NCBI GenBank assembly: GCA_965649825.1
Contig: OZ287715.1
Coordinates: 185,866-239,975 of the forward strand
DNA length: 54,110 nucleotides
Direction: 5' to 3'
Source: Penicillus capitatus
Lineage: Eukaryota > Plantae > Chlorophyta
In this document: piece by piece, positions 1 to 21,207 of the stretch
How the letters are laid out: each line of letters begins with the position of its first letter
Numbering within the stretch: the first letter of the stretch is position 1
Made by a program: the position numbers and the translations under genes
Notes under the pieces: model-generated
Seen by the model: the letters and a program-made list of their open reading frames with translations, nothing else
What the model was told of the DNA's origin: nothing
Databases searched by the model: none

Positions 1-296
1 CTCCCGTGGTCCGGCGGGGGGCCTCCCGTGGTCCGGCGGGGGGCCTCCCGTGGTCCGGCGGGGGGCCTCCCGTGGTCCGGCGGGGGGCCTCCCGTGGTCC
101 AGGCGGGGGGCCTCCCGTGGTCCAGGCGGGGGGCCTCCCGTGGTCCAGGCGGGGGGCCTCCCGTGGTCCAGGCGGGGGGCCTCCCGTGGTCCAGGCGGGG
201 GGCCTCCCGTGGTCCAGGCGGGGGGCCTCCCGTGGTCCAGGCGGGGGGCCTCCCGTGGTCCAGGCGGGGGGCCTCCCGTGGTCCAGGCGGGGGGGC
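1..296. repeat. Tandem array of 13 GC-rich units: 4 x 22 bp (CTCCCGTGGTCCGGCGGGGGGC) then 9 x 23 bp (CTCCCGTGGTCCAGGCGGGGGGC); possibly a terminal (telomere-like) array
   Basis: Read directly: units start at 1, 23, 45, 67 (22 bp) and 89, 112, 135, 158, 181, 204, 227, 250, 273 (23 bp). The overlapping ORFs in the track are translation artefacts of the repeat. Confidence 0.97.
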
Positions 297-466
297 AGTC
301 TTAAATGGCAACGTGAGAGCTTTCTCTGTTCTGCGAATGACACAACACCGATATTCTATCAAACGGCGGAAAACAATGTCGAAGACAGAGATATTCTCTC
401 AGACGGCGGAAAACAATGGCGAAGACCGAGTTCGCATTCCGACACATGGCATCTGAGTCATTGCAC
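294..466 (+). mobile_element. Isolated 5'-terminal 173-bp fragment of the LINE at 7501
   Basis: 172/173 identical to 7501-7673. Both begin GGCAGTCTTAAATGGCAACG and diverge after GTCATTGCAC. Confidence 0.95.
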
Positions 467-3400
467 TCAACTAATGCAAACAATCCCAACACGATCGCCA
501 TTTCATGGCCAACGGTCGATACATCGCAGATCCATCCATCCGTTACAGTGAGCACCTCAATGTCGTCTCAAGGCTGCTGAGAATTCGTGAAGACTTCGCA
601 GTAGATCATTGAGGTCGATGTTCGCACCTGCCCGAACCTGAATTCTGGATGATGATAATGACTGAACTGATTCGTCATGATAGAAGCATGAATTCCAGTT
701 CCGTTTCAGCAGGTATCCTGATGTCCAGAAAACCGTTGCTGTAGTCCACAGTTCTTCCCTGTAGCATTGCGTGCAGCTTTAGGACAAACCTCTGTTAAAC
801 CGGTTGTCCGAACAGAAAATTGACCTTAGCCACAATTCTACCCATCATCTCAAATTGTCAGAGTTCTGTTGCGAGGTCAGTAGTTTTCGACTGAGAAGAC
901 TTCGAACAACTGGCAGAATGACGAGACAGGCAAAGAGTGTTCCCTCGCACAAGATCTCTGATCTTGTTCCCGAAGAAAAAACGTCGGTGCTACTACAGGA
1001 CTTCAGGCAGTTCGTAAGGTATCCTTGCAAGATCTGCATACTCTTCTCCAAGAGCATTCAGGAGATAATTCCATACCGAACCATCCGAGTTTGTTAATCG
1101 TACATCACCTAGATGGAACACAACAAACCAACCCTCAGACGCGGTAACACTTAAACAGACCACCTAGTTTGCAGCCAATAAGAACGCACCATTAAGTAAA
1201 TCCAGTTCCTGGTTCGTAGCTTTGCACATAATCCAACACCCCTGCCTCACTTCGTCTGCCAACTGCCCATCTGACCATGTACACTCTCCAAGAAAGAGTC
1301 GTATTCTTTCTTTCTCGGAGAGTAGGTTTCCTGGCTGATGTCTCCATATTTGCAGATTCCTTTCTTCGCTAAACTTGACTCCTGCAAGAGCTGTTACACC
1401 CGATAGCGATGAAATATTGTGCAAAGCCCCTATTGCTTGAACAGGACCTCCATTAGAAATTCGCGTATCCAAGAGGGAACCAGACTGAAAGGATGTCTTG
1501 TCAGTACTCCCCTAACAAGCGTTTTATTCCAGAATAAGTTCTAGCAGGTAGAAGATGCAAGTAATCACGTTTTCCGCTGATTGTGTGCGTGTGGAAGAAC
1601 TCGGACAATTCATACTCACGTCTTCTTTAATCTTGTCTTCTGAAGATCTCCCGCAGACATCACTTTCTTCGCTTTCCGCCTTTGTACGTTGGTACTCGAC
1701 CTAGAGTTGGGTTCGTGTGGCAACAAAAATCAAAGAGCCTGGCCTGACCTTTGTGTCACTAATGGTCAGCGGATGCTGCAAAAAACTTCTCTGCGTTAGT
1801 CAGGGACTCATTTTCTTCGTCCTCCAATGCTACCCCAGTCAACCTCTTTTTCAATAACAATCATTAAGTGATCTGGCTTCGTCTTGTGCGTCCTTCATTG
1901 CTTGTCTGTAGCTGGCCGTTGCCTCCAAATATACGAGCCGTTTGCTTGGAATGAACAAGTCGTCTCCCGAAGTAGCCACCTGATACACTGTTCTCAAGCA
2001 CAATGTATAAAGCGCTACAATACACTTCTACCGAGAATCTCACATCTCCATAGTTGTCTGTGTGCAAACTGACTGTTTTCTCCCCTTTCTTCGCGTTCGA
2101 CAATGCACTGTACAACAAAACAATTGGCATTTCAAAGGAAAGGTGTACATCTGGACCTCTTGGCCATCAACTGTATGTCTCTCAGCGTGACGCTTAATGG
2201 CTTATTGATGCAAAGACCGACTGAGGCTTCTTCTGTATGTGACAATTAAAATACAGACCGTCGCGTTTCTTCCTTTTTCATTGTCCAGGGCATTACCATA
2301 AAGACAACAGATCGTTTAAACCAGCAGGTCAGCATCGAATGAGCAATTAAGACGACACCTCGTGAGGGCTCTGTCACCAGCTTTACATTTCCCTAAGAGC
2401 GATTCAGAGCAATCCGCGAAGTAGCAGATGTGACGGATCGATTACATTCGATGCTCCACTTGATCTTCTGCTTCCTACAAACTTTCCACAAAGGAAGAAA
2501 GACGGCATTGGAGTCATACCCAGAAGTTGATATCTTCTTCCCTTTTCTTAGAGCTTCATTGATAAATCGCAGCAGGTGCAGACTCTCTCCAATGGACGTG
2601 CTGTCACGCTCATGCACACATCAAGTTTCTAAGAGATAGAGACGTGTGGGATCGATTTCTTACCAGCAGATTTGCTCCTTGCTTTACTCTGTCGACCAAG
2701 TCATATTTCTTGTCTGACGTGGGAATGTAGAAATCCTTCATTCCGAAGTAAACATTGAGTATTCTCCTGAACGTGTACGGAAGGACTTCGGCATCGTTTC
2801 GAAGAATCGCCTGTCACGAAGAACAGAGAACTGTTGATCTAGCATCAATAACTCGCTTTACCTTCAAGACTGGACTCTCCGACTCTCCTCCAGAGTCTTC
2901 GACCTAACATGACATTGCCGACCATACCGAACGTAAACGTGTACTGCGCGTGTAACTGGTTCCGGATCTTACCCCTTCAGAATACCACGGTACACAGCTT
3001 TGGTGAGGGGGCTGTTCGCGTATGCCATGTGTTTCAATTCGACTTCCGCAAATGTGTCCGTCACTCAAAGGACAAAAGGAACACGTCAGACCACACGTTC
3101 TATGTTCGAGGTCTAAGCGTCGTGGAAGCCGTTATCGATGATCCAACCTTAATGTACATGTTCCGTGATGCACTAAAACGAATTCGAAGGTTGACGCCAG
3201 AGAAAGTCGTGTGTTGAAGAAAAACCTATTTTCGCCACATCTTCGGAACTCCTTGCGCGTTTCTCAAGCCGTCTGATGACCGATTCGTCGTTCCTCACGA
3301 ATCACTATTCTTTGAGTAGACTATGCACGCCGCACCCCAGAGCAAACCTTCATAGTTCCGGTGGTTTTGATGCTGCCGCATTGGTTGTGTGCTTACCTTG

Positions 3401-3900
3401 GCGCATTGGCAAGGTTGACTTGGTCACCACCATGAGTTCTGTTGTCTAAAAATGTCAGGAACAGGTTTGCTGACGCGGGCTCACCTCTCGAACTGGATCT
3501 GATTTTGGTCATTCGCTGTTTCTTAACAAATACCAACCCTACTGCACTTAACATCCGCACAGACTTCAGGATAATGATGGACCACTTCGGGATAACTGTC
3601 GACTTCTGGACAAATAAACCAAACAACGTGTAGGTCAATGTTGTCGTCTATGCTGAATGTGGGCAACATGGCCAGCCAAAGGACTTAACATGCTGACGTC
3701 AAACGAGGCAGCTTGTACTATACTTCACAGGTCTCGCTTTCCGAAAAGAAAGAAGCATTCTACCTTACCCTTTGGGAAGTGGTCCATTCTTCACAATAAA
3801 AAGGAAGCTCGATACGATTTCGCTACAAAGAGAGAAAAGAACTGCCCTACCTGCAGAAGTTTCCAATGTTCTGAGTGGAACGAAAGCAGCGATAGCGCTG
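467..3900 (-). pseudogene. Decayed intron-containing gene-like sequence of unknown family
   Basis: Protein-like minus-strand segments (e.g. AILRNDAEVLPYTFRRILNVYFGMKDFY, HERDSTSIGESLHLLRFINEAL, PGSLIFVATRTQL) separated by GT-AG intron-like stretches and many in-frame stops. No family recognised. Confidence 0.35.
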
Positions 3901-3931
3901 CATATGAGACAAAACAGTAAATACAAATGAA

Positions 3932-4231
3932 TATCTACCTTGGCAGCAGGATTGACGGCACACGTCCATGTTTCCGCCACCCAGAGGCAGCCCTCCGCGC
4001 CGGAAGATGTCAGTCCTCGACGCGGAAGTCGCTAGACAGATGTCTAGAGTCAGAAAGAGAATCGGTGGCCGACTGGAGACACTATACGTTAAGACCCGCG
4101 TTCCTGAAAGTAGTTTCGATCGGCTCGACAAAGGGAAACGCATCCAGTAAAGGACGGGCCGAAAGACGACCCGGCTTGGCACAAGTTGCTGGTACAAGGA
4201 CAAAAAAGATGACGAGATAGAGAGGATGCAT
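3932..4231 (-). pseudogene. 5' fragment (signal peptide and exon 2) of Cys-rich secreted protein paralogue
   Basis: Close nucleotide match to about 14480-14777 (MHPLYLVIFFVLVPATCAK...AEGCLWVAETWTC); similarity stops near 3932. Confidence 0.8.
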
Positions 4232-4288
4232 CGCTCAAACGCCGCCAAGCCAAAGAGGGCAAGAAGGACAAAATTTCAGGTGACATCT

Positions 4289-5143
4289 TCAACCTTTGGC
4301 ACATGTCTTTGCATTTTTGAACGAAGAGCACTTCTCCTGGGCTTCATGGAAAGGCTTTTCGAGGGCGGGATCCTGGCGAAAGATTTCATCTCTAATCTTG
4401 ACATTCGAAATTTTGCAAGCTATGACAGAGAGGTAGGTATAGGGGATTTGATTCAATTGAGAAGACTTGCTTTCATCTGAGCGATCCCAGCCGCAGTCGG
4501 GCATCTTGTCACACATCGCCATATTCTTGCTGCTCCTGCAGTTGGCATTGACGCGCATGTGGTAATACCGACACATAGGATCGGTCAAATTCTGTCCGGC
4601 GTTTTTCAGAAGCTCTGTGTCCATAAAGGCGTTGCCCAGAACGCAAGCACTCCGATCCAAGCGGCAAGGATCTGCAGCCATCTATAAAAACGCTACGAAC
4701 ACCATTGAGGGAAGGAAACCTGTGCGTTCCGTTGCGTTTCTAATGTGCGAACATCGCAAAGCCTGTCGTATGATGACCTTGTCTGTTGAGTTGGTAACGC
4801 GATCCAGCAACAGCTGGACGCACGTGAAAGCAAACCATGCAAATTCCTGTTCGAAACCCAAGAGAGATTGGCATTACCTCGTCTGCAATTGCGAAAGACT
4901 CGGCTAAGACGGCAGCACCGTGAATGCAGCCTTGGTTTTCCGAGTAGGTACACATGGGATCGGTATTGCACGTGTCGATGGAAGCATTGTGATATCTGTC
5001 CTTGCAGTAAACATAGTATGGGAACAAGTACTCCAGGTACGCGTCGACGTAATCACAAATCCCAGGTACGCGTCGACGTAATCAATCACAAATCTGCGGC
5101 GACACGAGTTAGACAGCGAAGAACCCATTTTATTCACGAACCA
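4289..5143 (-). pseudogene. 3' half of Cys-rich secreted protein paralogue
   Basis: Close match to 12954-13773 with the same introns; disrupted by a 29-bp tandem duplication plus a 4-bp duplication at about 5033-5094. Confidence 0.85.
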
Positions 5144-5309
5144 TGTCGCCCGGCGATGGGACTACTGTCTTGTTTTCGTAGAGGCCGCGGGTCTGTTTTT
5201 GGATGGGAAGGTGTAGCGAACCTATGACCTGTCGCTTGGAGATCGACACAAGTGTAAGTAGATGAGTTCATTGTTAGGGGCGTGTTGGCTTAACACAACA
5301 TGGGCACAC

Positions 5310-6070
5310 CTATCTTCTGTCTAATCTCCGAAGGAAGTCACGATGGACATTGTGCAGTGTCGAACCATTGGGCATGCGGATATCCCAACGGTGGTCACTA
5401 TGTTTCTTCACCACCACACAAGGATAGACCCATTTGGAGTAGAGTTTGGAGTCGAGGCGGTCGGCCAGCTGCGTGTTGTACCATGAAACCTATGCTCCTT
5501 CTTCAATGGGACGGATCTTGACTGTCTTGTGGTGTCTTGCTTTGGTTGTCTGGTGTGCCTTAATTATTCGTTGATAAGCTAGTCCTCGGTCGGTGTCTAG
5601 TTGTTGTGGACTAGTTATCGTGCCATCCCGTTGTGTGTCAGTTAGAAGGTATTGTGGACTGAACAGAGTCGTACTATTGTCAATATCAAGAAGCTGAAGG
5701 AGGAGAAAGAACTGAAGGGGAAGATGATACCGTGACATGAAGCATGACGCAATCATAACGTCATGCTGGAAAATCATATAAAAAGGGGGTTTTCAAACAC
5801 TCGATGCCTTTTTGTGAAAAACGTCCTGTTTACTTTTAAGAAACACATTCGCACGTAACACCAGTCACACTTTTGATAGTTGATCGTTAGGCCATATTCG
5901 TCAAAACGTTCAAATAAAAGCTTAGTCTTGTGTAGGAGTTCTTTCTCCGATTCACCTCCGACTAGTATGTCGTCAAAGTATCGTACCACATCCAGGCCCT
6001 GTAGGATGTGGGTCATGCGGTTATTGAACAGTTCGGGACTGACGTTGACTCCCTGTGGCAGTCTCCGCAA
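5310..6070 (-). mobile_element. Internally deleted Ty3/Gypsy LTR-retrotransposon remnant: RT fragment and integrase C-terminus
   Basis: RLPQGVNVSPELF...RYFDDILV...GLTINYQKC (RT, about 5860-6066). TTLFSPQYLL...AYQRIIKAHQTTKARHHKTVKIRPIEEGA*VSWYN...KLYSKWVYPCVVVKKHSD...IRMPNG...NVHRDFLRR resembles the GPY/F-type integrase tail (about 5310-5680). RNase H and integrase core are absent; no LTR pair was identified. Confidence 0.72.
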
Positions 6071-6639
6071 TCGCGAACGTCAACAATGAGTGAGATCTGA
6101 GCATGGGCCTGAGGAGCCTGAGGAACCTGCGTCTGAGTGGTTGCCAACGGAGTAGCAGACATTGATGAAGTACTGGCCGTGTCTTTCGCCGATTCTGTTT
6201 ACTCGCCACGCCGACTTTTTCTCGCGGCTGATCTTCAGAACTGCGTTTAAGGCTTCTAACTTCTTCGATTCGCTCTCCACAGATAGAATGTTTTCGGCGT
6301 TCAACGCCAATATCCAGAAATCCGCAAAGGCGGTCCAGGATGCCATCACTTCTCTCTCTCTTGAACGATTCTTCTTACCACACAGTGGACCTTGTCCTTT
6401 AGTCTGTCTGAGCCGGAAATCGGAAAGGCGTGTGGTCCATAATCAGCACTGTCTCCTTCGGTATCCATGAGAGCATCGCGAATCCGTTTTTTTAAGATCT
6501 GGAACACCTGCGCATCGAACTCCTGCGCTGCAATCCGGTTGAGCACTGTCTCCAGCATGCCTTCCATTGGCGTCGATGGCCGCAACTGTGACGGTGCGCC
6601 CGCCATCGCCTCGGGTCTTCTGGTAAAGGGACGCTGCCG

Positions 6640-6875
6640 TTGTCGTCTCGTTGGCGTGGACGCGTATCGCGAACGAGTCCTCGAGCTCTTCAGTGTCCGG
6701 GTTTCTTCGCTTGAGGCGCGTGATTTCACGTATGGTCTTCTGTGCTTCGGATGGAGGGAGTTCATGTATCTCTGTGTTCTTGATCAGCTCCTCCCTGATT
6801 TCTTCCCACCGTGATCGATTTGTCGACACCGTTGATGATGAAGGACGGTCCAGGGGGGGCCTCCCGTGGTCCAGG
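6640..6875 (-). mobile_element. Fragment of ORF1 (gag-like) from a second, diverged LINE family
   Basis: After removing one extra G, GPSFIINGVDKSITWEEIREELIKN...QKTIREITRLKRRNPD...AIRVHA aligns with GPSVVIENVPEISTDELIEDLVWKN...QKMIKGATRLKRRLPD...GIRLFA of ORF1 at 7623-9218. Confidence 0.72.
6847..6875. repeat. Single interstitial copy of the terminal array unit
   Basis: GGTCCAGGGGGGGCCTCCCGTGGTCCAGG; 22 bp (6854-6875) match the array exactly, but the period here is 21 bp. Confidence 0.95.
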
Positions 6876-7622
6876 ACAAAAAGTCGTGTGTTTGTTGACA
6901 GATTCGTCGTCCGACTCGGTGGACTTTCTCCCTAAACTGATCATTCCCAGAGACTGGGAAGGTATGCGGACCATAGTTCAAGCTGTCTCCCTCGGTGGTC
7001 GTCAAGGCTTCATGAACCTGTCTTCGGAAGGTTCGGAAAATCTTCCGATCAATGTGTTGCGCTCCAATCTGGTTCAGCGCTCTTTGAATGTCGTCTTCCA
7101 TACGGCGTCGGCGTCGATTTCAATGCTGATGGCCGAACGAGGTTGTTCAAGTAGTCTTCACTGAACTTGCCAGAAGAGAGCAGTGCTTGAGACAAGACAC
7201 TGGCAAAATTAACGCGGCGCTGCTGTTTTTGGAAAAGAACTGTCAAGAGTTCAAGTTTTCGTCGCTGAGAAGGCGCTCGGGTGAATGCCCTTCGGTGAAG
7301 TCAAGATCCTCAACCAATACGTCGAGCAAAGCAACCACACCACGTCGCCAAACTTGGCAGCCAACTAACACGGACACAGCATCATCATCCGTTAACAGTT
7401 AACCATCGCTCAGTCTCCGCTATCGCTGAGGCGTTTGGCGCGACGACGAGTGAACGGGGAATTGCGCTTGGCGTTCCATGCGTTTTGTGCTTTACCGTGA
7501 GGCAGTCTTAAATGGCAACGTGAGAGCTTTCTCTGTTCTGCGAATGACACAACACCGATATTCTATCAAACGGCGGAAAACAATGTCGAAGACAGAGATA
7601 TTCTCTCAGACGGCGGAAAACA

Positions 7623-9218
7623 ATGACGAAGACCGAGTTCGCATTCCGACACATGGCATCTGAGTCATTGCACCTTTTCTGTCACGTCATGATTCGTTCT
7701 CCTCGAGTGGCGTCGGACATGCTTGACCCAGGGTCGGGGAAGGTTCGGAAGACTTCAGATCTACGTTCTGATATGCCTCCCCTCCCTTCTAGGGAGGGCA
7801 TAGCGCGTGCTCCTTCAAAAGAACTCAAACGGTTGCTCAAACAGCGAGGTTGCTCATTTCGCAGCCAGGCACCTGTCTTCGAACTTCGCAGCATGATATC
7901 GTCTCTTATCGACGAATCCGAGGTTCAACTTCGCCACCCTGCCGAAGCTCAGCAGGCCTCCTCGGCCACTCAGCCTCCGCCCGTAACGGAAGCTACGAAT
8001 GTTCCATCAGTCGCGTCCTCTGTCACCAATCCAGTCATAGAGACCTGCGAGAAGCTTGCCGCTATCCTTGAGAAAATGAGAATGGCTGACCAGCAGTTGG
8101 ACCGCGATTTCTTTGCCCAAGTCGCCGGTGCCTATGTTGATGGAATTCGAGCGGGCTTTCTTCTTGGAGCGAAGACTCTGCCCAAAGAACCTGCCAGCAC
8201 GTTAGAGACTTTCCGCGCACCTCCAAAGGCTGCGCTGTCCTATGCAGCTGTGGCCCGACGGGAAGGGCAAAACTGGAGTCAGATTCCGAAAGCTTCCGTC
8301 GCGAACCTCAGAGATCGACAGCGCTCTGACAAGAAATCTGCCCTTGCCAACCTCGCTAAGATAGGAGCCGGTGGTCGAGATCCTGAAAGGACGCGCATTT
8401 GGGAACCGGAGTTTCGCTCCTACAACCAGGTGCCCGTTGATAGACTGAAATTCAAGACCGAGCTCGAACAAGCCCTTCACAGGATCTGTGGCAGCAGTCG
8501 TTGTATAGAGCGCTGCTCGAATCGCCTCGACAGAGGCGGATTTCTCATCCAAATCTCAGAGCCAGCGTGGTCGAAGCTCAGCGACCTGAACCAAGACGCA
8601 GTGGCACTAGAAACCCTCGGTACTTGGAAGAGATTACCACCTCCCAGTGGACCATCTGGCCCATCTGTCGTCATCGAAAACGTTCCGGAGATCTCTACAG
8701 ACGAACTTATCGAAGACCTCGTATGGAAAAACTGTTCCGTGATTGGACTGCGACCAGAAGAAATCCAAAAGATGATAAAAGGCGCCACACGCCTCAAACG
8801 TCGTCTTCCAGACGGATCATGGGGCGAAGGACGTGGAATCCGCCTTTTTGCGGAACACGATCTACTGGAGATCCTGATCAACCAAGGGGGCTGCTTCGTC
8901 AATTTGAGCGCGCGTTACTGTCGCAGATTCGAGCCAGTTTCCTATCTATGCATGAAATGCGGGTGCGTGGGGCATCACAAAGCAGTAGACTGTCCCAACC
9001 CTCCCCTCTGCTCTTATTGCAAGCAGTCACACTTGTCCTCCGAATGCCCATCCCGCAAGGCTTCGGAGCAGCCGTCGGCACAATCAGCTCCTCTTGAGCG
9101 AAACCGAGTAAGCAGCTGGGGTTCAGACGTCGAAGAGGAAGACGCTGCCATGGCAGTAGATGCAGCTCCCCACCCTGTCCAGCAAACGTCACCGTTAATG
9201 CAACATGGAGAACAGTAA
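7623..9218 (+). CDS. LINE ORF1 (gag-like nucleic-acid-binding protein)
   Basis: 531-aa ORF with CMKCGCVGHHKAVDC and CSYCKQSHLSSEC knuckles near the C-terminus. The true start codon may be downstream. Confidence 0.9.
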   Translation: MTKTEFAFRHMASESLHLFCHVMIRSPRVASDMLDPGSGKVRKTSDLRSDMPPLPSREGIARAPSKELKRLLKQRGCSFRSQAPVFELRSMISSLIDESEVQLRHPAEAQQASSATQPPPVTEATNVPSVASSVTNPVIETCEKLAAILEKMRMADQQLDRDFFAQVAGAYVDGIRAGFLLGAKTLPKEPASTLETFRAPPKAALSYAAVARREGQNWSQIPKASVANLRDRQRSDKKSALANLAKIGAGGRDPERTRIWEPEFRSYNQVPVDRLKFKTELEQALHRICGSSRCIERCSNRLDRGGFLIQISEPAWSKLSDLNQDAVALETLGTWKRLPPPSGPSGPSVVIENVPEISTDELIEDLVWKNCSVIGLRPEEIQKMIKGATRLKRRLPDGSWGEGRGIRLFAEHDLLEILINQGGCFVNLSARYCRRFEPVSYLCMKCGCVGHHKAVDCPNPPLCSYCKQSHLSSECPSRKASEQPSAQSAPLERNRVSSWGSDVEEEDAAMAVDAAPHPVQQTSPLMQHGEQ

Positions 9219-12200
9219 ATACTCGTTTTCTTCCAGTGATCCATCCTCAAGTTTTTTCTCAAGAAGCGATTCAGTTTCGACGATACAGCTCAATCCTACC
9301 CCCCGTCACATAGATCAGTCAACAAGTTTTCTTACGTTTGAGCAAATAAATCTTGCCTCCCGCAGCTTGAGTCTACCCGCTTTGGAACTCTGGATGAACG
9401 ACTCGGCGCCTTGTCTGGTGGCAGTCAGCGAAGCTCCGTGGCACCTAAGGAACAATGAATTTCGCTCAAATCGTCACATCTGGCTGAGATCATCTCCACA
9501 AGGTGAATCGCTGTGTGGACTATTCATCAGGGAAGATATCAACTTCTCTATGGTGTCCTTGTCCAGTCCTTCCCCGAGGGTCATAGCAATCACTGTCTAT
9601 ACCCCTGCCGGATTGATCGGGGTGATCTCATTCTACGTGCAACACACCTCCGGAAACGGTCTTGAAGCGGTCGACGAAGCATTCAACCTACTGAAGAGAA
9701 AAACCGACCGCATATTTCTGTTAGGAGACGGAAATGGTCACTCCTATCTGTGGGGTCCGGAGCACCCAACGAGATTGGCCGTTTATGGGAAGACTTTATA
9801 AGTGCAAACCAGCTGGTCGTCGCTAACGACCCCTCAGGCCCTCCTACTTTCTTCGATCAAGATCACAGACCACATTGGCTTGATATTACTCTGGCCACAG
9901 CGCCGCTATCAAAGTCGATAGTAGAATGGAGAGTAGTGCACTCAGCCATTCCAGTTTCCGATCATTCGCTCGTTAAAACAACGCTCAACCTCGGGTACCA
10001 AAAGATCACTCCCCGAAGATTCACTAACTGGAGGGACGTGGACTGGCCTGCCTTCAATGAGCACCTCGAAAAGACACTCAGCCGGCCTGAGTTCTTATTG
10101 CCCATGGAGACCCAAGATCAAATCGATGAACGCATCGATATGCTGACAAGTGCTCTACAGAATACGGCCTCTCAATTTACAAGGACAAAGACAATCCAGA
10201 ACCATTCGAAGCCTTGGTTCACACAGTCTGTCAAGTTTAAATGGAAGGATATGAAGCGTGCTCGGAATAGGTACATACGAGCGGTCCAAAAGGCCAAGAG
10301 TCACCCTATGTCTGCCCAACTCGAAGTCGAATTGGCCACGCGCTGGAAGGAAGCACGCGAAGCCAGAGCCTCATTCAAGAAAGAAGTTCGGCTACAGAAG
10401 AAAAACTCCTTTGTCAAATTCTGCAGTGACATGAAATCGGACATGTGGAATGGCTTTGCAAAAATCGACAGATCTCGGAAACGTAGCCAACCCGCCCAGC
10501 CACCAGAAGATCACAAATCATTGGAAGCCCGTTTCTTTCCAAATGAAGGAAAGTCTGTTTTGGGGAAGTTCGCGGAAGACTTCAGAATAGCCAGAAGACG
10601 CCTAGACTTCTCCCCGGGAGAAGAGATCACATGGAAGGAGCTCGTAGAAGCAATCATCCGGTCAAAGGATGGAGCGCCTGGGCCCGGACTCGATACCATC
10701 TTTGTGTCTTCGCAACACCCTAGGTGTGACCGGCCAAGTCCTCCTTCCAATTCTGAACGCAGCGCTTTCCTTGGCATACTTCCCGAAGGCCTGGAAGAAA
10801 GCTTCCGTCATCCCACTGCCCAAACCTGACAAAGATCTCTCCCTCGTGTCCAGCTGGAGGCCAATCTGCCTTTTGAACACTCTAGGAAAGGTCCTAGAAA
10901 GAGTTCTACAGCGTCGCCTGTACAGCTTTCTCGAAGAGCATGGATGCCTGGTCGATCAACAGTTCGGTTTCAGAAGAGCTCGCAGTACAGAATCGGCGTT
11001 GACCTGGTTTGCGGAAGACATCATTCATGCTTTCAACTCTCGCAGTCAGATCGGCGCCGTGAGCCTAGATCTCACTGCAGCCTTTGATACCGTCCCCCAT
11101 CCGATCCTAATGTACAGATTGGGGCAGCTCAAGATTCCAGCCTACCTGTGGAGCATGGTAGACAGTTTCCTAGTGGAAAGGGAAGCTACCATCTCCCTCC
11201 CGACGTCCTCGATCCACTGCCGTCCGGTGGCTGGTGTGCCCCAGGGGTCATGTCTGTCGCCTACGCTCTTTCTGTGCTCTGTCAACAGCCTCGCAAACTC
11301 AGTTCCCCCTGAGGTGAAATGCTGTCTATTCGCTGATGACTGTCTGCTATACTGCCAGATTGGCCCACGGGGCGAAGGCCAAGCACATCTCGAGTCCTCC
11401 TTGAAGAAGGCCGTCCAGTGGGCAACACTCAACGGAATGCAGTTTAATGCCAGCAAAAGCCATCTGGTACGCTTCTCAAGACTCCGAAAGGCCACATCGA
11501 TCCAAGTGAATCTGGACCGCTCCCTATTGCAAGAAGAACCACAGTTCACTTACCTCGGGCTGACAATGGACAGCAAGCTAAACTTCAGCGCTCACGTCTC
11601 GGGAGTCTGCATGAAAGCACAGCGTCGACTGGAGTCCATCAAACGGATCAGCAACAGTTTATGGGGTGCCACTCCTGGCGTCCTGCGTACACTGTTCCAG
11701 GCATGCGTTGCACCAGTCCTCTACTACGGAGCCCAGATCTGGTCATCCGGTAGTAGAGCCCTAACGCAGAAGAGGAAGTCCTTGATGTCGGTCAATCGGT
11801 CTGGTGCCCTCCTCATCACTGGGGCTCTTCGCATCACATCAACAGCAGCAGTATTAGCCCTAGCGGGCCTAAGGATCCCCGATGATGAAATCACTCGACG
11901 CTCTCTTCTTGCTAAGGTCAAACTGGAAGATTTGTCCTTCTACGATCTTCGTCCTGCATTGGCTGGAACTTATGACTCACCGCTGTTCCTCATCAGGAAC
12001 CGTTACGAAGAGTTCCTGTCGCAAGAAAAACTGGATAGATGGGAAAAGATCACTCTAGAATCCATGAATGGCGGCGATCAAGCTGGCTTCGAGTTACTGC
12101 GTTTTGAAGCCTCATTATTTGCAGATTCGAAGGGGAAGATCGCTTGGGAATCGACGGATCGTGCAAGCTCTCTGAAAGCCACGTGCTTTGACAAGGTTAA

Positions 12201-12525
12201 GATGACTCGGTTGAAATGGTGGAAAGCACACAGCAGAAGACAGTTCACAGCCCTCTGCAGATTCCTAACAGGCCACCTGGCAACCCGTGTTTATCTCAAC
12301 AGGTTTAATCTGCTCAATACCGCCGATGGAGACTCAATTCTTTGCCGCTTTTGCGGCCGCGTGCCAGAGACAAGAGATCATCTCCTGAAATGCTCAGCAT
12401 GCCGACACATCCTGCCTACAGGCTGGAAGTTCTCAGTTCCCGATTGGCCGTCTGTTTGGTCGTCGAAGAAATTACGAGTTCAAATGGCAGAATTCGCGAT
12501 TTCTCTGCAATCTCGTCTAGCATAA
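9205..12525 (+). CDS. LINE ORF2 (AP endonuclease, reverse transcriptase, CCHC finger), split by two 1-nt frameshifts
   Basis: APE: QINL, VSEAPW, LLGDGNGHSYLWG, WLDITL, SDHSLV. RT: APGPDSI, SWRPICLL, QFGFRRARST, LDLTAAFDTV, GVPQGSCLSP, FADD, YLGL. C-terminus: FLTGH...CRFCGRVPETRDHLLKC. Frameshifts at the G-run 9752-9755 and C-run 10683-10685. Confidence 0.92.
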
Positions 12526-12953
12526 GCAATTCGCTCAAACGTGCGCCTATCATTTTGTGAATCTCTCAATGAACGCTTCTTTGTTTCGTTTTTGTATGTT
12601 TTTTCTGTCTGCTCATGGCACATGTGAAAGCAAACGCCATGTAAATAAGGAATTATATACCTGTACACAGTATTTGCTAGACACGACCATACCCCCATTG
12701 AGAACGACAGACCATTCCACATAGGAGGACACTTGTTCATGGTGCAGGAGATTACGAGCGCTGTTGACACGAGGAGTGGTAAACTGTGTAGTACTTTACG
12801 CCATGCTACTCAATCTCTATCAGGTTTAAATGGTGACTGGTTATCAATGCGGTGGATGTGTGGGACATGTTCGTGGTGAATATAATGAACTGGCAATGAA
12901 GATAAGGAATACAAGAACAACAAATAGAAAAAGAAAAATCTCAGGTGACATCT

Positions 12954-14777
12954 TCAACCTTCGGCACATGTCGTCGCATTTTTGAACGAAGAGCACTTAT
13001 TCTCGGCTTCAAGGAAAGAGTTCTCGAGGACGGGATCCTGGCGAAAGATTTCTTCTCTAATCTTGGCACTCGAAAGCTTGTAAGCTGCGACAGACAGGTT
13101 TAAAGGACCTGAATCGTTTGAAAAAAAACTTGCTTTCATCTGAGCGATCCCAGCCGCAGTCGGGCATCTCGTCACACATCGCTATATTCTTGCTGCTCCT
13201 GCAGTTGGCATTGACGCGCATGTGATAATACCGACACATAGGATCGGTCAAATTCTGTCTGGCGTTTTTCAGAAGCTCTTTGTCCATAAAGGCGTTGCCC
13301 AGAACGCAAGCACTCCGATCCAAGCGGCAAGGATCTGCAGCCATTCATAAAAACGCTACGACCACCATTGAGGGAAGGAAACCTGTGCGTTCCGTTGCGT
13401 TTCTAATGTGCGAACATCGCAAAGCCTGTCGTATGATGACCTTGTCTGTTGAGTTGGTAACGCGATCCAGCAACAGCTGGACGCACGTGAAAGCAAACCA
13501 TGCAAATTCCTGTTCGAAACCCAAGAGAGATTGGCATTACCTCGTCTGCAATTGCGAGAGACTCGGCTAAGACGGCAGCACCGTGAATGCAGCCTTGGTT
13601 TTCCGAGTAGGTACACATGGGATCGGTATTGCACGTGTCGATGGAAGCATTGTGATATCTGTCCTTGCAGTAAACATAGTATGGGAACAAGTACTCCAGG
13701 TACGCGTCGACATAGTCGCAAATCTGCGGCGACACGAGTTAGAGAGTCAAGAACCCAATTTATTCACGAACCAGTTGATCGTATCCTGTCGGGCAGTCGG
13801 TCGTCGGCGGTTTGACAGTAAACGTCAAATACCAGTCAGGTATTGTCTCCGATACAACGTTCACTAAGGGTGCGACTTGATCCAACATGGTTGACAACTT
13901 GAATTGATCGACCTAAAAACAGGAAACGGCGCGCGTGCGACGCAGCTTTACTCATGCTCGAACCGCAGTGGTGTTTGCCCTGAAAGCCTCCTCAGATTCC
14001 AACCCAAACTCGATGTGGTACATATCCGCATAGCAGACCTTGTTCTCTTCGTTCCTATAGATATAATGACGAAACAATATCCGAAGGGAAAACGGTACCA
14101 GGTGCAGCCCTTCAGTTTTCTACACGTGGTCGATTTGGTGCGCGAAGGGCATTGGTCAAAAAGACGGGAGTAAGTGAAAACCAGCGGCGCGTTTGCAATA
14201 CAGGGGGAGTCCGAATACTGGCCCAACATATCGACAAACGTACATATCTTGAGCTGCCTGTGTGTATGCTCCGCGTCGACAACGAGGAAGAAACGTGCTT
14301 GCCCCGGACCTATTCCATCCGCATTTTTCGAGGGCGATGCACTGCTCTTGGTCAGTTCCGATGACTTGACATTCCTAAAAAAGATTGGACAGTGGCATCA
14401 TTGTGTAACGCCGTTGCCATGTCGTGCCAGTTCATGAAAGAACAGTCCGGCAATGCCACTTTGACTGGAACGGAGCATATCGACTTTGGCAGCTTGACTG
14501 ATGTTACACGTCCATGTTTCCGCCACCCAGACGCAGCCTTCCGCGCCGGAAGATGTCAGTCCTCGACGCGGAAGTCTCTAGACAGACGTCTAGAGTGTGA
14601 AAGAGAATCGGAGGCCGACTGGAGACACTATACGTTAAGACCCGTGTTCGTGAGAGTTGTTTCGATCGGCCCAACAAAGGGAAACGCGTCCAGTAAAGGA
14701 CGGGCCGAAAGACGACTCGGCTTGGCACAAGTTGCTGGCACAAGGACAATAAAGATGACGAGACAGAGAGGATGCAT
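12954..14777 (-). CDS. Secreted Cys-rich repeat protein, paralogue B (multi-exon; possibly pseudogenised)
   Basis: Signal peptide MHPLCLVIFIVLVPATCAK; repeated C-x8-C-x5-C-x-W modules (CPSRTKSTTCRKLKGCTW, CRSSKNIAMCDEMPDCGW); intron positions shared with paralogue A; in-frame TAG at 14578-14580 unless a shifted acceptor is used. Confidence 0.7.
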
Positions 14778-15131
14778 CTCGCAAACGCCACCGAGACAAA
14801 AGCCAACAAGGACACATGCGGCGAACCAAACCGCAGTACCGTCAAAAGCGCGTAGACGGTTAACATTGTACGACGACAGGTCGACGACGATACAGAGCTG
14901 TGAAGTCAATCGCGAAAATGTCGGACGCGTCGTGATGTGACTGACCTATGTCTCGCTATGTCGCCAGTTTTAGAAAAGTATCAGACCCTGGTGGTCCTCT
15001 TACATGGACAGCCAATTTCCATGTACTCGCATCACCCACACCTTAAAGAAAGAATGAGAGAAATGTAACACAAGCACAGCGAAAAAAGAAAAGAATGAGC
15101 GCCCGATCAAAATGACCCGGCGAACAGATGC

Positions 15132-16947
15132 TCACGCCTTGCTGCACGCTTTGGCGTTATTTTGCGGCTGGCACGTCTCGGCCGCTTCAGTGAGTGGTTT
15201 CTTGAGCTTCGGATCTTCCTCAATCAATGCTTCTCGAATCGTATCGCTTGAAACGTCGCACTCTAAACACGAGAGGACTTAGCGATGGCAGATATCTCTA
15301 TAGACCTGCCTTGGTGGGCTGTCTTCCACTCACAGCCCTTTGTGCTCGAGCACTTTTTCTCGGTGTCAATATCGAGGCAGCCCGAATCAAGCTGCATACG
15401 AAAGTACTGGCAGACAGGATCCTTTGAATCTTTCTTGGCATCCTGTAGGAATTCTTCGTCCATGTAGGCCCTCCGAATGGCACAAGTATTCCGCGTCCAC
15501 TGGCAATTCCCTGGATCGGCTTGTCAGATTCCTCGCTCCCTCCACGACGGAAGCGCACCTTTGCAATCGGCTGCTTTGGCGATACGGTCGCAACGCAGGA
15601 ACTCTCGTGCGAGGTGGTTGTCCGTTTCGTCTTCGATGAGATCCAACAGAACCTAAGTCACACAAAAGAAAGTGAGATATCTGACGGCAGGCGGCGTGCG
15701 TTACTTCGTCTGCCTTTTCCAGGCTTTCGATCATGATTTCGTGTCTGTGTGTACAGCCCTGGAATGCATTGTGGCGGCATAGCTTGTCCGCATTGCACGT
15801 CTTCTCTTCTTCCTCACTGTATCTGAAAAAGCAGTATGCGTGCTCTGGAAACATGTGCGGAAGATGCGCATCCACATAATCACAAATCTAAACGCATGCG
15901 AGTAACGACTTGCCGGATATCAAACACATCTGTTGCACGTACCAGTTGTTCAGTGCCGTCTGGGCAATCGCTTATAGGAACCTTGACCTTGAGAAGCGAT
16001 TTCCAGTCTGTTTTCTTGTTCGATTTCTCGACCGTTGGGGCCACCTCCGCCAACCCTGTCGCCAGTTTGCGCTGATCGACCTGCAATGCACATCGCTGAG
16101 GCGACTGACCATTGTCTTCCGAAAACAGACTTTGAGAAACTCAGTTGTAAAGGCATCGCGGGATTCCACTCCAAAGTAGATATGGTAGAGATCCGCATAA
16201 CACAGATCGTGCACTCGGTCCCTGCACGAGAGTAAAAAGAGGCAGGTCATGATGATGATCGGTCTGACCAACTGCAGCCTTCGAATTCTCGACATGCCCT
16301 GATTGTCGCCTGCGACGGGCATTGCAGAAAGAGTTGGGTATAGGAGAAGGTCAACGGTGAATTCTCGACGCACGGCGAATCGGGATACTGACCCAAGAAA
16401 TCGACAAATTCGCATGTCTTTGATCGCCTTAGTCCAATCAATGCTCCCATGACGCAGCAGCAGTGGTGGAGATCGCATACCTGTTCCATCCGCATTCCTC
16501 GAGGGCAGCGCATTTCTCCTCGGTCGTCCCTGATGCCGAACATTCCTGAAGAGCAGCACATCATCTCGCTCGTCCATCTTCTAACCGTCGTTGTGATCAA
16601 GTGCACCTTTATGTGCATCCAGAGCTTGGCAAATTCGTTTTTGCTCTTGCGAAGAATGCCAGCTTCGACGGAGGGACTCGAAGCGCACGTCGACGCATCA
16701 TCGTTCCATGTACACGTCTTCTTCGCCAACAGCCCACGACGAGGCAGACTCTCTAGCTTCGCCTGCAGCCGAGCGTCCTTCGATGCCTCTCAACAAGGCG
16801 CCTTACCTCATAGCCTGTGTTCGCCGATGCGGTATCCGAGAGCGTAACGGGAAGGAACGTGTCTGGCAATGGACGTTTTGGATCTTTCGCCGTGCACAGG
16901 GAGGTTTGCAATAAGGGAATCAGGATGAGAAGGATGCGTTTATGCAT
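15132..16947 (-). CDS. Secreted Cys-rich repeat protein, paralogue A (multi-exon)
   Basis: Signal peptide MHKRILLILIPLLQTSLCTAK; modules CSASGTTEEKCAALEECGW, CPSQATIRACREFEGCSW, CLDIDTEKKCSSTKGCEW; exons colinear with paralogue B; ends ...AKACSKA*. Confidence 0.8.
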
Positions 16948-17003
16948 GATACAAAGAATCGCTCAAGCAATGGACGACGCAGGTGTTGGAGGAATGCGTT
17001 CGT

Positions 17004-18440
17004 TTATACCACCCTCGTATCATAAACGCGGACGGTTGAGTCATCTGAACCGGCAAGCACGAGGGGTCGATCTCGATGGACGGCGAGACATTGAATGGCT
17101 TCGCGATTTCCCCAGAGCTCACGCACCGCCGTGGCCACGCGTGTGTCCCACAGTCGAATGCACCCATCCATGCACCCCGTTGCAAAGAGAGATGCATTCG
17201 GAATCGGCTCCATACATGATACGCCTTTGGGATGATCGCAGTTCTGTCTCCGTGTTAGGGAGGTTCGATCCCAGACCACCGCCTTCCCATCCAATCCCGC
17301 CGTCAGAATCGCCGGCAGCAGGCCGTCCGTAAAGCAGACGCTTTCGACAGAGTCTTCATGCCCTAGAAACAATAACGCCGTTGGAATTCACGGGGCGTGG
17401 CGGAAGCGGGAGGGAACCTGCTAATATCGCTGTCGATTGTGCGCTTGCGAGATGGCAGACACGCGTTGTGCCGTCGGCAGATCCGGTCAACGATAGAAAT
17501 CCATCCGGCGTTAGGTCCAAACAGGTAATGCCGGCTTCGTGAAAATTGTATCCGCCAATCGATGCGGTGCAATCGCCTGTTCTGGGATTCCAGATCTTGA
17601 GACTGGGATCTTGATCGTCCCCTGTCGTCACCACTGTCCTTCCATCCGTCGTAAACGCACCGCATGAGACGCCGCCGCCATGTCCGGAGAAGACCTATGC
17701 ATGATGGGACGTACGAGAGTGGCGCCGTTGATCGTGATCAGACCTGCATGCAAGCTCCTGTCTGAGCATTCCACATCCAGACGGAGTAATCATCCGAACC
17801 GGCAACGATCACATTCCCTCTCGGATGCCAACAGATCCAATTGACGGTATCTTCCGGTCCATCCAGTGTCTGTAGCAAAGTACCGTCCGTGGTAGACCAC
17901 ACTTTCACCGTGCCTATGTGTCACATCATATGTCCTTGCGGCGAAACGGGCACCTGGGTTACCCTCCATTCCTGCTGTGGCCAACATCGAGCCATCGTGA
18001 TTGAACGCAACGGCAATGACCGAATCCGCATGACCGTCCAGTCGGCAGACGGGCATATCTTCAGAGGGCGTATCGGGACTGCACGTCTACAGAGATGATG
18101 CCCCTCGTTGCTATCAACATGTCCATACGGCGCGCAATGACCTTCCAGACAAAAGCGGTGTCGTCTTGTCCACCGGAGGCAACGGTGAACGGGTCGACTG
18201 GACTCCAGGCCACACAGAAAACGGACTCGATGTGTCCGGCAAAGCAATGGAAGGCATCATCCCCAAACTCATGCTCGGCTTCCGGTACCTCGACGACCGC
18301 CTCGTCGGACGCAGGTCCTTAACCGAAAACCGTTTTCTCTCCGCGTCTGCAATAGAGCGAGCGTTACCGTCTTCTTCATGCCCCTCCAGATCCGCAATCA
18401 CCTGGTCGTCATCGAATAGCTCGTGGTTATCGGCGCACAT
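17004..18440 (-). CDS. SQT1: WD40-repeat protein, AAMP/SQT1-like ribosome assembly factor
   Basis: Acidic N-terminus followed by WD repeats (GHIESVFCVAW, ASGGQDDTAFVW, LDGHADSVIAVAFNHDGSMLATAG, GHEDSVESVCF, GCIRLWD). Start is approximate. Confidence 0.75.
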
Positions 18441-18652
18441 TGAAATGACGTTTACGGCACCATCTGACGATCCATGCGTCTGTCGATGAAGTGCATAGCA
18501 ATTACACGGTGGCTCAGTTCTTCATCATGAGAACCGACAAGCACGTGTCTCACAAATCCAACGACCTTATGTTGCATCCGTCAAAGATGCGTGGCGGATC
18601 GATCGCGTATCTCACACGCTTTGCGAATCCAACAAAGCATGGGTCCGTCTTA

Positions 18653-19457
18653 TCATGATAAGAGGATCAAAATGGCGCAAATCACACCGACGACGACACC
18701 CGCAACGACAGCCAAACACATTTTCTTGCTCGTTGCTGCCCGCTGACTCTTCTCTGCCGTTTCCAGTTCCTCTCGACCCGCCTGAACACGATCGGCGGTC
18801 AAAATAGCGTTGGTCTCCACATTGTCCACCATCGTTCCTTGATCATGCACCATAACGGCCACATCTTGAAACATCTCGTTCAATTCCCCGATGTCTTTCA
18901 CCAATCCCTGAATCTCGGTATCACGCTCTTCGATAATGGCCTCGTTGTATGAAATCATATTATCCAGACGTTGGACCTCTTGCTGCTGATGCTGTCTCAA
19001 CAGATGCTCGTTTTCTCCCTCTTCATCGACCGCACGCGATCCTGCCGGTGTGCTCATGTTGGGAGGCGACGACACCTCACGATCGGCCGTCAATTTTAGC
19101 GCCTACGGGGCAGCATCCGATGCACAAGGGTTGACAGCAAGAGGGCAGAACCTTTTGAAAAGTGTCCAGGTGCTGTGCAAAACGTTCGACGCTCTTCTTG
19201 AGTCTGTCCTGCTGTTTTGTGTCCATTTCCTGCTTGGTTGTGTTCAGTTTGGAAATATTGTCCTTCAGCTCCTTGGCTCGGCGTTGGATCTCGTCTTTCT
19301 GTATGGAGATGCTTGCACGAAGGGTCACGGTGTCTTTTGGCGTGGCTAATTGATCTCCAAGACGCATGTACTTCTCAATATCCGTATTCAGACGGAAGAC
19401 CTGTTTCTCCAGAGCTGACAGGGCCTGTTGCATGTATTCGTCAGAGAGGGATGGCAA
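18653..19457 (-). CDS. Qa-SNARE syntaxin (SYP2/Pep12/STX7-like)
   Basis: Habc helices, SNARE motif (EERDTEIQGLVKDIGELNEMFQDVAVMVHDQGTMVDNVE) and C-terminal TM anchor. The 5' end is unresolved. Confidence 0.9.
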
Positions 19458-19739
19458 GAACGAATGGAGGACATTGTCTGTTGGATTGCCCTTCGTGGAA
19501 ACCGTTTTTTGACGGCCACCCGTTGCGGCTGCCTTGTCCTGAAAAGAAGACAGTTCCTACCATTTCAGTGAGTCCCCCGAGGGGGGCCAAAGAAAAAAGA
19601 ACGCCTGTCATAGGCGGGAGACCACGCACCATGAACGTACGATTCATCGTGGAAGGGGCTTATAGAAATATCGGCAAGATGATGTGACATCAATCAAGAC
19701 AACGATGACGACGACGTGATACCTGCCTTCCACGATTTC

Positions 19740-20439
19740 ATGTCTTCTAAGCGCAGTCTCCTCGATTTGTTGCCTCAGCCAAAACAGCGCCAGGATAAAG
19801 TAAAGACGACGCTTTGATGTGACAGGTCGTGAAGAACAACGCGCTTTAGATTCCGACGAAACGGCCGAGGAAGGGTGAGACGGAAGACGAGGAGAAGAAG
19901 AGTGCGGCGAGCCTTGGAGACAACGAGCTGTATCGAGTAAACCTGAGTGCTGAAGAGACGACACGGGTCACGTCATCTTCCCTACCCGAGATTCCCGAAA
20001 CGACGCCATCGGCCGAAGCGGCACCACCAGAAGACAATGCAGATGCGTTGATCATGAAAGCACTAGAAGAAGAGCAGCTGCGCTCGAGCAAAGGAAAGCG
20101 CCGAACAGGCGATATCGAATTCAAAGAGGTCTTGGGACGCTCCCTTTGACGCTTTTGCATATGCCAATGGGGTGGCAGATTTCGCAAGACGCGCTGAAGA
20201 GTGGCGTCTCCAGTGTACAGCGCGAGGTCGATGCGATTGGACTGGCATTGAAAGCAGATGAAGACGAAGACGATCGCGTAGTGATGCCGGACTATACGTT
20301 GAGCAAAGAGGCGCACCGTAAGCATCAGATCACGACACTCTATCAGACCATGAAAAAGAACGAGACGAAGCTGATGACGAAAGAGGCTCAGAATGCCAAA
20401 ACCAAACGGGAGACAGAGAGGAAGTATGGATGGCGTTAG
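19740..20439 (+). CDS. PRCC: PRCC-domain protein
   Basis: N-terminal SLLDLLPQPK and C-terminal HRKHQITTLY...AKTKRETERKYGW match the PRCC C-terminal motif as recalled. Confidence 0.7.
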
Positions 20440-20679
20440 CGCATGATGTCTGTCGGATTTTGATCAGTGCAGAATGAACGCCCTTTGGCTTTAATGCTGC
20501 CGAGGAACATCTAGGCGAAGTGCGACGTCATACCGCTGTCTGTCTGTCGATTGTCAACTCCTGTCCCCGAGCGCCGTTTCTCGCAGCAGTAGAGGATCCA
20601 GGTGCTTCTGTGCCAAATCCGAAGCGTGTTGCGCTTTTGACGTCGAAACTCGCATTTCGTTAACGGCATCGGGAGAGAG

Positions 20680-21207
20680 ATGTGTTGTCCTTTCAGCGAC
20701 CTTTCTCAGATGAGCGCTCAGTGGACGGAGCCGTCAGAGTTTGAGGAAAGTAAATCGTTTCTTCGGCCGTGGTTCAGCCTCGAGGTTGTGCCTTCAGTAT
20801 GGCCGACGCCTGAACCCGATTCAACGTTATGGACATCACCACCCTATGTCCGGAAGGCAGACGGCATCTTCGACGATGACAAAGACGACTTCGCCAATCG
20901 GTCAGAGTCATGGCTCGTCCGTCGTCGTCATCCGATGGCGCAAAGGAGACCAAGGAGCTTCGGAAAGGAAGACTGGCATCTGTGCTCCTGTGGCGAAATG
21001 CACTGCCGAGGCGTACGTTTCTTCGCCGAGGACGATTGTAGACGTGAGATTCGTTGCCTCGTGCCGCGCAGCTATGACGTATCTATGCCTGTGCTGATAC
21101 AGATGGACAGAGACGTTATGTGTGGACACCAGGCATCAACCGCGTTTTCTACGAGGCACTCGCATATCTGGGCGAAGAGACGTCGCCAAAGCCGATTCTC
21201 CACGTAA
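20680..21207 (+). CDS. Hypothetical protein with a post-SET-like CxCG-x3-CRG motif
   Basis: 175-aa ORF containing HLCSCGEMHCRG; otherwise unrecognised. Confidence 0.3.
   Translation: MCCPFSDLSQMSAQWTEPSEFEESKSFLRPWFSLEVVPSVWPTPEPDSTLWTSPPYVRKADGIFDDDKDDFANRSESWLVRRRHPMAQRRPRSFGKEDWHLCSCGEMHCRGVRFFAEDDCRREIRCLVPRSYDVSMPVLIQMDRDVMCGHQASTAFSTRHSHIWAKRRRQSRFST

Follow-up and report, generated by a model that had tools for sequence, protein, structure and literature searches.

A contracted minisatellite remnant joins two old mobile-element pieces through a shared 8–9-nt sequence

The window, meaning here the whole stretch of 54,110 nt that was analysed, contains a gene for a calcium-dependent protein kinase, genes for SecA and for a methionyl-tRNA synthetase with a tRNA-binding domain, and HECT and RCC1 genes, together with a cluster of repeated and retroelement-derived sequences, the parts of which are listed below. 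A second contig from the assembly of the window, sequenced at low coverage (ctg339849_6x, 191 kb; L007), starts exactly at window position 15288, where the repeats end, and matches the window over ∼730 bases (15288–16020, compared by eye); a duplicate contig carries, just past the right end of the window, an ORF of more than 1685 aa with Cadherin/Big_9 repeats (L006, 1–2132).

1–293: terminal array of four 22-nt units (CTCCCGTGGTCCGGCGGGGGGC) and then nine 23-nt units (CTCCCGTGGTCCAGGCGGGGGGC), adjoining the leader at 294
294–466, plus strand: leader copy 1, 173 nt, 99% identical to 7501–7673, opening block N and unit T
294–3930, plus strand: block N, the leader and a further 3.46 kb, with a right end that is alike in the window and in sister locus L003
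1164–1472, minus strand: AlgH/DUF179-like gene fragment (Pfam E 7e-9), embedded in block N and unit T
3931–5143: copies of local ancestral sequence, 3931–4270 resembling 14477–14814 (89%) and 4270–5143 resembling 12935–13773 (90%)
5144–6846, minus strand: block Wr, a repeated block whose RRM end carries the array in every locus
6064–5777, minus strand: RT fragment of Wr (Pfam RVT_1, YFDD)
6576–6349, minus strand: Module B of Wr, followed by TCCTGGACC at 6340–6332
6854–6560, minus strand: ORF1-like RRM fragment of Wr, similar to LINE ORF1
6847–6875, minus strand: the site, comprising 1.4 array-repeat units whose C-run has 7 bases and sharing the register of both flanks
6868–7135, minus strand: Module A, a paralogue of Module B (47% at the amino acid level), ending exactly after its native TCCTGGACC (Ser-Trp-Thr)
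6876–7500: segment A, which separates the site from leader copy 2
7501–7673, plus strand: leader copy 2, preceding the LINE body
7623–9218, plus strand: LINE ORF1, with an RRM and CCHC knuckles
7677–12659, plus strand: body of an APE/RT LINE, with a 3′ end (..CATGTAAATAAGGAATTATATA) free of the array
9205–9801, 9750–10829 and 10669–12525, plus strand: LINE ORF2 (APE and RT), frameshifted and split across three overlapping frames
12660–13773: W″, ancestral single-copy sequence that is found in a related genome, adjoining the LINE 3′ end; in sister loci Wr lies on its other side

Positions 294–6846 make up a 6.55-kb unit, T, a four-part mosaic of block N, the 14477–14814 copy, the 12935–13773 copy and Wr, which is repeated head-to-tail in sister locus L002 with an array between the copies. 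The leader contains a 2 × 40-nt tandem repeat (window 350–430 and 7557–7637) and corresponds to no known RNA, since the whole window gave no Rfam match at gathering thresholds. The annotated start of LINE ORF1 (7623) falls within the leader, and another copy of the LINE (L001) starts ORF1 at the equivalent of residue 51; the sequence upstream of that copy is unrelated, with no significant leader match, and the end of the leader (466/7673) lies 4 nt from the point at which homology to the L001 LINE begins (7677). Segment A is probably natively contiguous with the leader, as the 6 nt that close it (CGTGAG) stand ahead of the leader in L003 as well. A comparison of the right end of block N with the LINE 3′ UTR gave an unconvincing alignment. 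An intact LINE ORF2 of 1071 aa is present in a related assembly (L079).

On the minus strand, Module A (7101–6892) and Module B (6567–6358) are 47% identical over 70 aa (E 6e-22), and their DNA alignment extends through TCCTGGACC and ends directly after it. As the paralogue carries TCCTGGACC at the homologous position, this stretch is native to Module A, which bears out the claim of the preliminary description that the first of two CCTGGACC copies at the site belongs to the upstream module. At 6332–6360 on the minus strand, Module B is out of frame with its own downstream part (SWTAFADF..), with 2 nt more than Module A, a frame shift that marks both module copies as pseudogenes. An exhaustive HMMER search with Module B and its downstream part returned one more copy in the same assembly and one weak match (E 9e-4), and Pfam gave no match for the modules or for the RRM fragment; by these sequence comparisons the module has no known relatives. 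A second RRM was suspected upstream of Module A and set aside, as shuffle tests gave it no support.

The ORF1-like fragment, which is itself frameshifted, shares 50% identity across 38 aa with the RRM region in ORF1 of the plus-strand LINE (Smith–Waterman score of 97 compared with 24 ± 4 for shuffled sequences, with 0 of 500 shuffles reaching 97). Ahead of the RRM strand VVIENV the LINE ORF1 reads ..PPPSGPSGPS, and ahead of FIINGV the fragment reads ..APPGPS (CCT GGA CCG TCC). The second CCTGGACC, previously taken to be the Gly-Pro codons of the fragment, does overlap the Pro-Gly-Pro-Ser that opens it, where the LINE ORF1 has ..SGPSGPS-VVIENV; because the paralogous ORF1 has SGPS at that place, the Gly-Pro-Ser codons are plausibly native to the fragment.

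Between these two pieces lies the site. Direct reading of the minus strand from 6875 to 6847 confirmed the composition first proposed for it, CCTGGACC-ACGGGAGGCCCCC-CCTGGACC, and its identification as a copy of the array unit was likewise upheld, by an exact 21-mer match, of which none is expected by chance, and by a blastn alignment. The 21-mer CCTGGACCACGGGAGGCCCCC occurs exactly 10 times in the window, nine times in the array at 1–293 and once at 6855–6875, with three more array copies when 2 mismatches are allowed and a chance expectation of 0.00 (100 shuffles), making the site the sole copy of the array unit outside 1–293, in the same orientation as the array. Positions 6847–6875 align with 31 nt of the array at 93.5% identity, the sole difference being 2 nt in the C-run (CCCCCCGCC in the array, CCCCCCC at the site). 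The 8-mer CCTGGACC, for which ∼0.9 occurrences per strand of the window are expected by chance, is confined to the array, the site (twice) and 6332–6339.

Read on the minus strand, the repeat unit is CCTGGACC-ACGGGAGG-C(6–11), and the C-run is hypervariable both between units and between copies of one junction: 7 bases at the window site, 10 in the corresponding site of locus L075, 6 + G + CC in the window's terminal array, 7, 7, 6, 8 and 8 in the L002 array, and 8, 8, 8, 7, 7, 7, 11, 10, 10, 9, 10, 10, 9, 10, 10 and 7 in the L003 array. The unit period consequently ranges from 20 to 25 nt, being 21 nt at the window site and in two of the five L002 units, so that the concern voiced earlier over a period of 21 rather than 23 is moot. 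In the terminal array, the first four units, counted from the contig end, have no T in their CCTGGACC (CCGGACC, 22 nt) and the next nine possess it (23 nt), and a G interrupts the C-run in 13 of 13 units, which is seen in no other array. Unit variants are homogeneous in blocks (8, 8, 8, 7, 7, 7, 11, 10, 10.. in L003; nine of 23 nt and then four of 22 nt in the window), which points to array dynamics at the DNA level. A scan of a metagenome collection (241 million records) for GGACCACGGGAGGCCCC yielded 67 contigs with a single match each and no arrays, and these single matches are due to chance.

Sister contigs of ENA assembly ERZ25074695 were reached via proteins P0042 and P0043, and a search with protein P0044 reached the opposite end of ctg340228, a contig of 309 kb; this end holds a copy of window 5049–13773 with 98.9% identity. 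A six-frame search with peptides of the array recovered P0043 alone among the best 8000 candidates, the others being Pro/Gly-rich, and is silent on how widely the array is spread; exact-protein look-ups gave no additional contigs with block N or Wr, so that four arrays were available for study. In all four (window, L002, L003 and L075) the junction between the array and the RRM fragment, ..CCTGGACC|GTCCTTCATC, is identical and the register constant; the RRM-fragment copies are 95–98% identical and descend from one ancestor, and this constancy counts as one observation. On the far side the array meets GACTGC, the 5′ terminus of the leader, at window 294 and in L002, and GACTGCCTCACG, the leader plus 6 more nt, in L003, whereas the unit at the window site and in L075 meets Module A (..TTGTCCTGGACC). 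Two of the far-side junctions are thus 6 nt apart at the leader 5′ terminus, and the independence of the L003 junction depends on those 6 nt. No two junctions have the same number of units (1.4, 5.7, 16 and at least 13). Beyond its 16-unit array, on the distal side, L003 carries ∼9 kb of complex satellites (11600–20807; units of 23, 28, 46, 158 and ∼400 nt) that reach the left end of the 309-kb contig, and of these the 23-nt unit CAACCGTAGCAAATGTGTCATCC is unrelated to the array.

That the site arose as a chance match or a misassembly is a notion for which the low-complexity C-run alone speaks, and it can be dismissed with near certainty: zero matches are expected in shuffles, and ctg340228 (L075, 8507–8540) carries the identical arrangement within a paralogous copy that is 98.9% identical over 8.8 kb, reading TCCTGGACC-ACGGGAGG-C10-TGGACCGTCC with a C-run of 10 in place of 7. 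Since the junction is present in this independently assembled second copy, misassembly, which the preliminary description had named as a way in which its account might fail, is excluded; nor is the unit a common dispersed minisatellite, the other such possibility, as all four arrays seen adjoin one sequence. The site is therefore a real, contracted remnant (1.4 units) of a hypervariable minisatellite, joining two old mobile-element pieces via a shared 8–9 nt.

Where the unit itself came from is a question compatible with either of the joining mechanisms weighed below. It may have begun as native coding sequence, a Pro/Gly-rich linker (PGPREAP)n preceding the ORF1 RRM of a second LINE family, which then expanded as a minisatellite. 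The base period of 21 nt equals 7 codons in frame with PGPS-FIINGV and reads PGPREAP, the paralogous LINE ORF1 has a short tandem duplication (PPPSGPSGPS) at the same place, and the junction between array and RRM is constant, as native continuity predicts. Set against this, the constant junction counts only once given the single ancestor of the fragment copies, most units now have periods of 22–25 nt, the RRM fragment is frameshifted, and protein and HMMER searches gave no intact relative and no protein bearing this repeat, leaving a coding origin a rather unlikely one that still merits consideration.

Far less probable is that the array is the 3′ tail of an autonomous LINE, as in CR1, UnaL2 or I-type elements. 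The copy number does vary from junction to junction, and the array sits at what would be the plus-strand 3′ end of Wr, but the LINE in the window ends at 12659 without a unit (the junction with W″, ..GGAATTATATA|CCTGTACACAG at 12659/12660, carries none), the A-rich 3′ UTR that closes the intact related LINE (L079) has a motif similar to that of the window's LINE and no array, and the end of Wr shows no similarity to the LINE 3′ UTR. The unit-free ends of both LINEs largely refute this origin.

A terminal role for the array had also been proposed, with telomere healing as a possible source of the junction. According to this proposal the array would be a telomere-like terminal repeat of the organism, a broken end in Module A would have been healed by repeat addition seeded at CCTGGACC, and retroelements would then have stacked upon it. 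The array does sit at the contig end in the window, every junction is in register, with ..TTGTCCTGGACC|ACGGGAGG.. continuing from the native 8–9-nt match, homopolymer variation within the unit resembles the irregular repeats of some telomerases, and the plus-strand elements of the window have their 5′ ends towards position 1. A related genome (ERZ26696514) speaks for an internal position, however: its locus L078, ∼355 kb from the end of a 4.08-Mb contig, is colinear both with window 29070→12829 and with the unique flank that follows W″ in L002, so that the window genes and the L002 flank are neighbours in this relative, with only W″ between them. In the window's organism the repeat cluster accordingly appears, from this synteny, to lie between the window genes and the L002 flank. 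Both L002 and the right end of ctg340228 break inside the cluster, in the opposite orientation and facing the first base of the window; with the flanks adjacent and internal in the relative, the array at 1–293 most likely marks a contig break in an internal cluster rather than a terminus.

Other observations weaken the healing account further. The strand ending 3′ at window position 1 (minus) bears the C-run and the plus strand the G-run, the reverse of the usual telomere polarity; an array is found at a contig end in one case only, that of the window, and the orientation of the elements is mixed, with the plus sense directed inwards in the window and L003 and towards the contig end in L002 and L075. 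All arrays are tied to a single block, Wr, and the scan of 241 million metagenome records gave none. The closest solved structures to the window's kinase include entries that we take to be apicomplexan CDPKs (Plasmodium, Cryptosporidium and Toxoplasma), and apicomplexans use TTTAGGG-type telomeres. Telomere healing is on balance improbable. Related to it is the suggestion that a reverse transcriptase produced the repeat by reiterative copying of one specific RNA with a redundant 3′ end (GGUCCAGG..GGUCCAGG), or that the repeat is a true non-canonical telomere of the source organism, an uncultured and probably alveolate protist, with the window at a chromosome end, which we likewise consider distinctly unlikely; the 8-nt terminal redundancy once read as the geometry of a reiterative template is shown by any 1.4 copies of a tandem repeat and provides no independent evidence. 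Were the reiterative reading true, it would describe a retroelement-borne, telomerase-like template capping or bridging DNA 3′ ends.

The mechanism of joining is constrained by the register of the join, which coincides with the 8–9 nt owned by Module A; the probability of this by chance is ∼4e-6, implying that homology guided the event. The site also forms the boundary between Wr and the 5′ end of a plus-strand composite made up of segment A, the leader and the LINE; at its opposite end the composite finishes with the LINE 3′ end at 12659, set on ancestral single-copy DNA. In plus-strand order the array closes Wr, and next come segment A, leader and LINE in some cases and just the leader in others. 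We tentatively favour, with less than even confidence, a switch of template by the LINE reverse transcriptase, which would have used the microhomology to move to an RNA with the repeat at its end; that a reverse transcriptase and not a DNA repair pathway made the join is what we infer.

During insertion of the LINE, first-strand cDNA would have been primed at 12660 and extended leftwards through the LINE and the leader, halting within segment A at ..TCCTGGACC-3′. The cDNA 3′ end could then pair with GGUCCAGG in another RNA, a putative Wr transcript that carries the repeat at its 3′ end, whereupon the enzyme would switch template and copy one more unit and then Wr. Similar switches at the leader 5′ terminus, or close to it, might account for the arrays with more units (5.7, 16 and at least 13), and minisatellite slippage would subsequently have altered both unit number and C-run length.

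Consistent with a template switch, the array–RRM side is constant and the far side variable among the window, L002, L003 and L075, and the far-side junctions fall within 6 nt at the leader 5′ terminus, as would be expected of RNA 5′ ends; the unit number differing at every junction points the same way. The LINE 3′ end stands on W″ exactly where, in L002 and in the related genome, the start of W″ runs on into ancestral flank, and it looks like a target-primed junction. In ctg340228 two W″ copies that are 99.73% identical, compared with 90–96% for other W″ pairs, flank the succession of Wr, unit, segment A, leader and LINE, an arrangement resembling a long target duplication around a single insertion; the second copy is followed by Wr again, and a long target duplication and a plain tandem duplication both fit. 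The ancestral flank in ctg340228 joins W″ 3–4 nt inside it (L080 10035, compared with L002 7038–7380), ∼340 nt of flank being absent relative to L002, which makes this another breakpoint of the cluster.

The same region offers a second way of making the join, in which DNA-level repair or recombination, whether at a break, through slippage or by a template switch during replication, fused the native CCTGGACC of Module A by microhomology to a CCTGGACC of an array already in place, with MMEJ, MMBIR or an SSA-like deletion leaving 1.4 units and segmental or tandem duplication spreading the block. A direct 8–9-nt microhomology of which one copy is kept fits this as well as it fits the reverse transcriptase model, an 8–9-nt direct repeat being also a classic MMEJ substrate. 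The region is a mosaic with many array-free breakpoints (466, 3930, 4270, 5143, 7673 and 13773), the site itself has been duplicated along with its 8.8 kb of surroundings, and the block-wise unit variants, which count against a template switch, are typical of unequal exchange. The junction between Wr and W″ (5144|13773) is common to arrangements otherwise counted as independent insertions, so that some copies must have arisen by DNA duplication; this also tells against a template switch, as does the frameshifted ORF2 of the window's LINE. An ordering of the duplications was attempted, but no unique scenario accommodates both the 13773|5144 junction, shared as it is, and the existence of two kinds of unit. 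DNA repair gives no account, however, of the position of the remaining array junctions, no more than 6 nt from the leader 5′ terminus, or of the clean LINE 3′ end with which the composite meets ancestral DNA, and it is a possible but doubtful source of the join, over which the template switch is preferred.

If the template switch is true, the locus clearly preserves, in nature, a jump of a LINE reverse transcriptase to an RNA that ends in a repeat, made at a 9-nt match, with three related junctions displaying event-to-event variation in unit number. It would then bear on the origin of junction minisatellites and chimeric retrocopies and on how the priming of LINEs and telomerase are linked in evolution. 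On present evidence the junction is of an ordinary microhomology type and lies in a region of segmental duplication, with no evidence for a new type of telomere.

Chimeric LINE retrocopies produced by reverse transcriptase template switching include the U6–L1 type chimeras, and the R2 reverse transcriptase performs end-to-end template jumping. The site resembles these in having a 5′-incomplete copy of a LINE family fused in the same sense to the 3′ end of another sequence, a LINE 3′ end on target DNA, and microhomology at the switch point; it differs in that the acceptor is a 1.7-kb block ending in a 20–25-nt repeat and no known small RNA, that several units could be captured, and that the locus is known from DNA sequence alone. 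Microhomology is also known at the 5′ junctions of truncated L1 insertions and at MMEJ and MMBIR breakpoints, with which the site shares 8–9 nt of common sequence, of which one copy is kept, and a heavily rearranged surrounding region, although here the microhomology lies within the repeat unit, so that the join fixes the register of the array. Chromosome healing and short interstitial telomeric sequences likewise involve a repeat that extends in register from a short non-repeat match, whereas the present repeat is internal by synteny, has the wrong strand polarity at the contig end and is found on one block only. Telomere-associated retroelement arrays (HeT-A/TART/TAHRE, SART/TRAS, Zepp and Athena-type Penelope-like elements) have in common with the cluster a head-to-tail stacking with short repeat tracts between elements, but the orientation to contig ends is mixed here (two loci against two) and the LINE 3′ end is without the repeat. 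The tail repeats of LINEs (UnaL2, CR1 and the I factor) have units of 2–8 nt; slippage at such tails provides a parallel for the variable unit number at an element end, and terminal redundancy would allow realignment, yet the unit here measures 20–25 nt and is not on the 3′ end of an autonomous LINE. Beside these systems the junction is an event of an ordinary kind that is unusually legible, distinguished by the length of its unit and by the series of related junctions to which it belongs.
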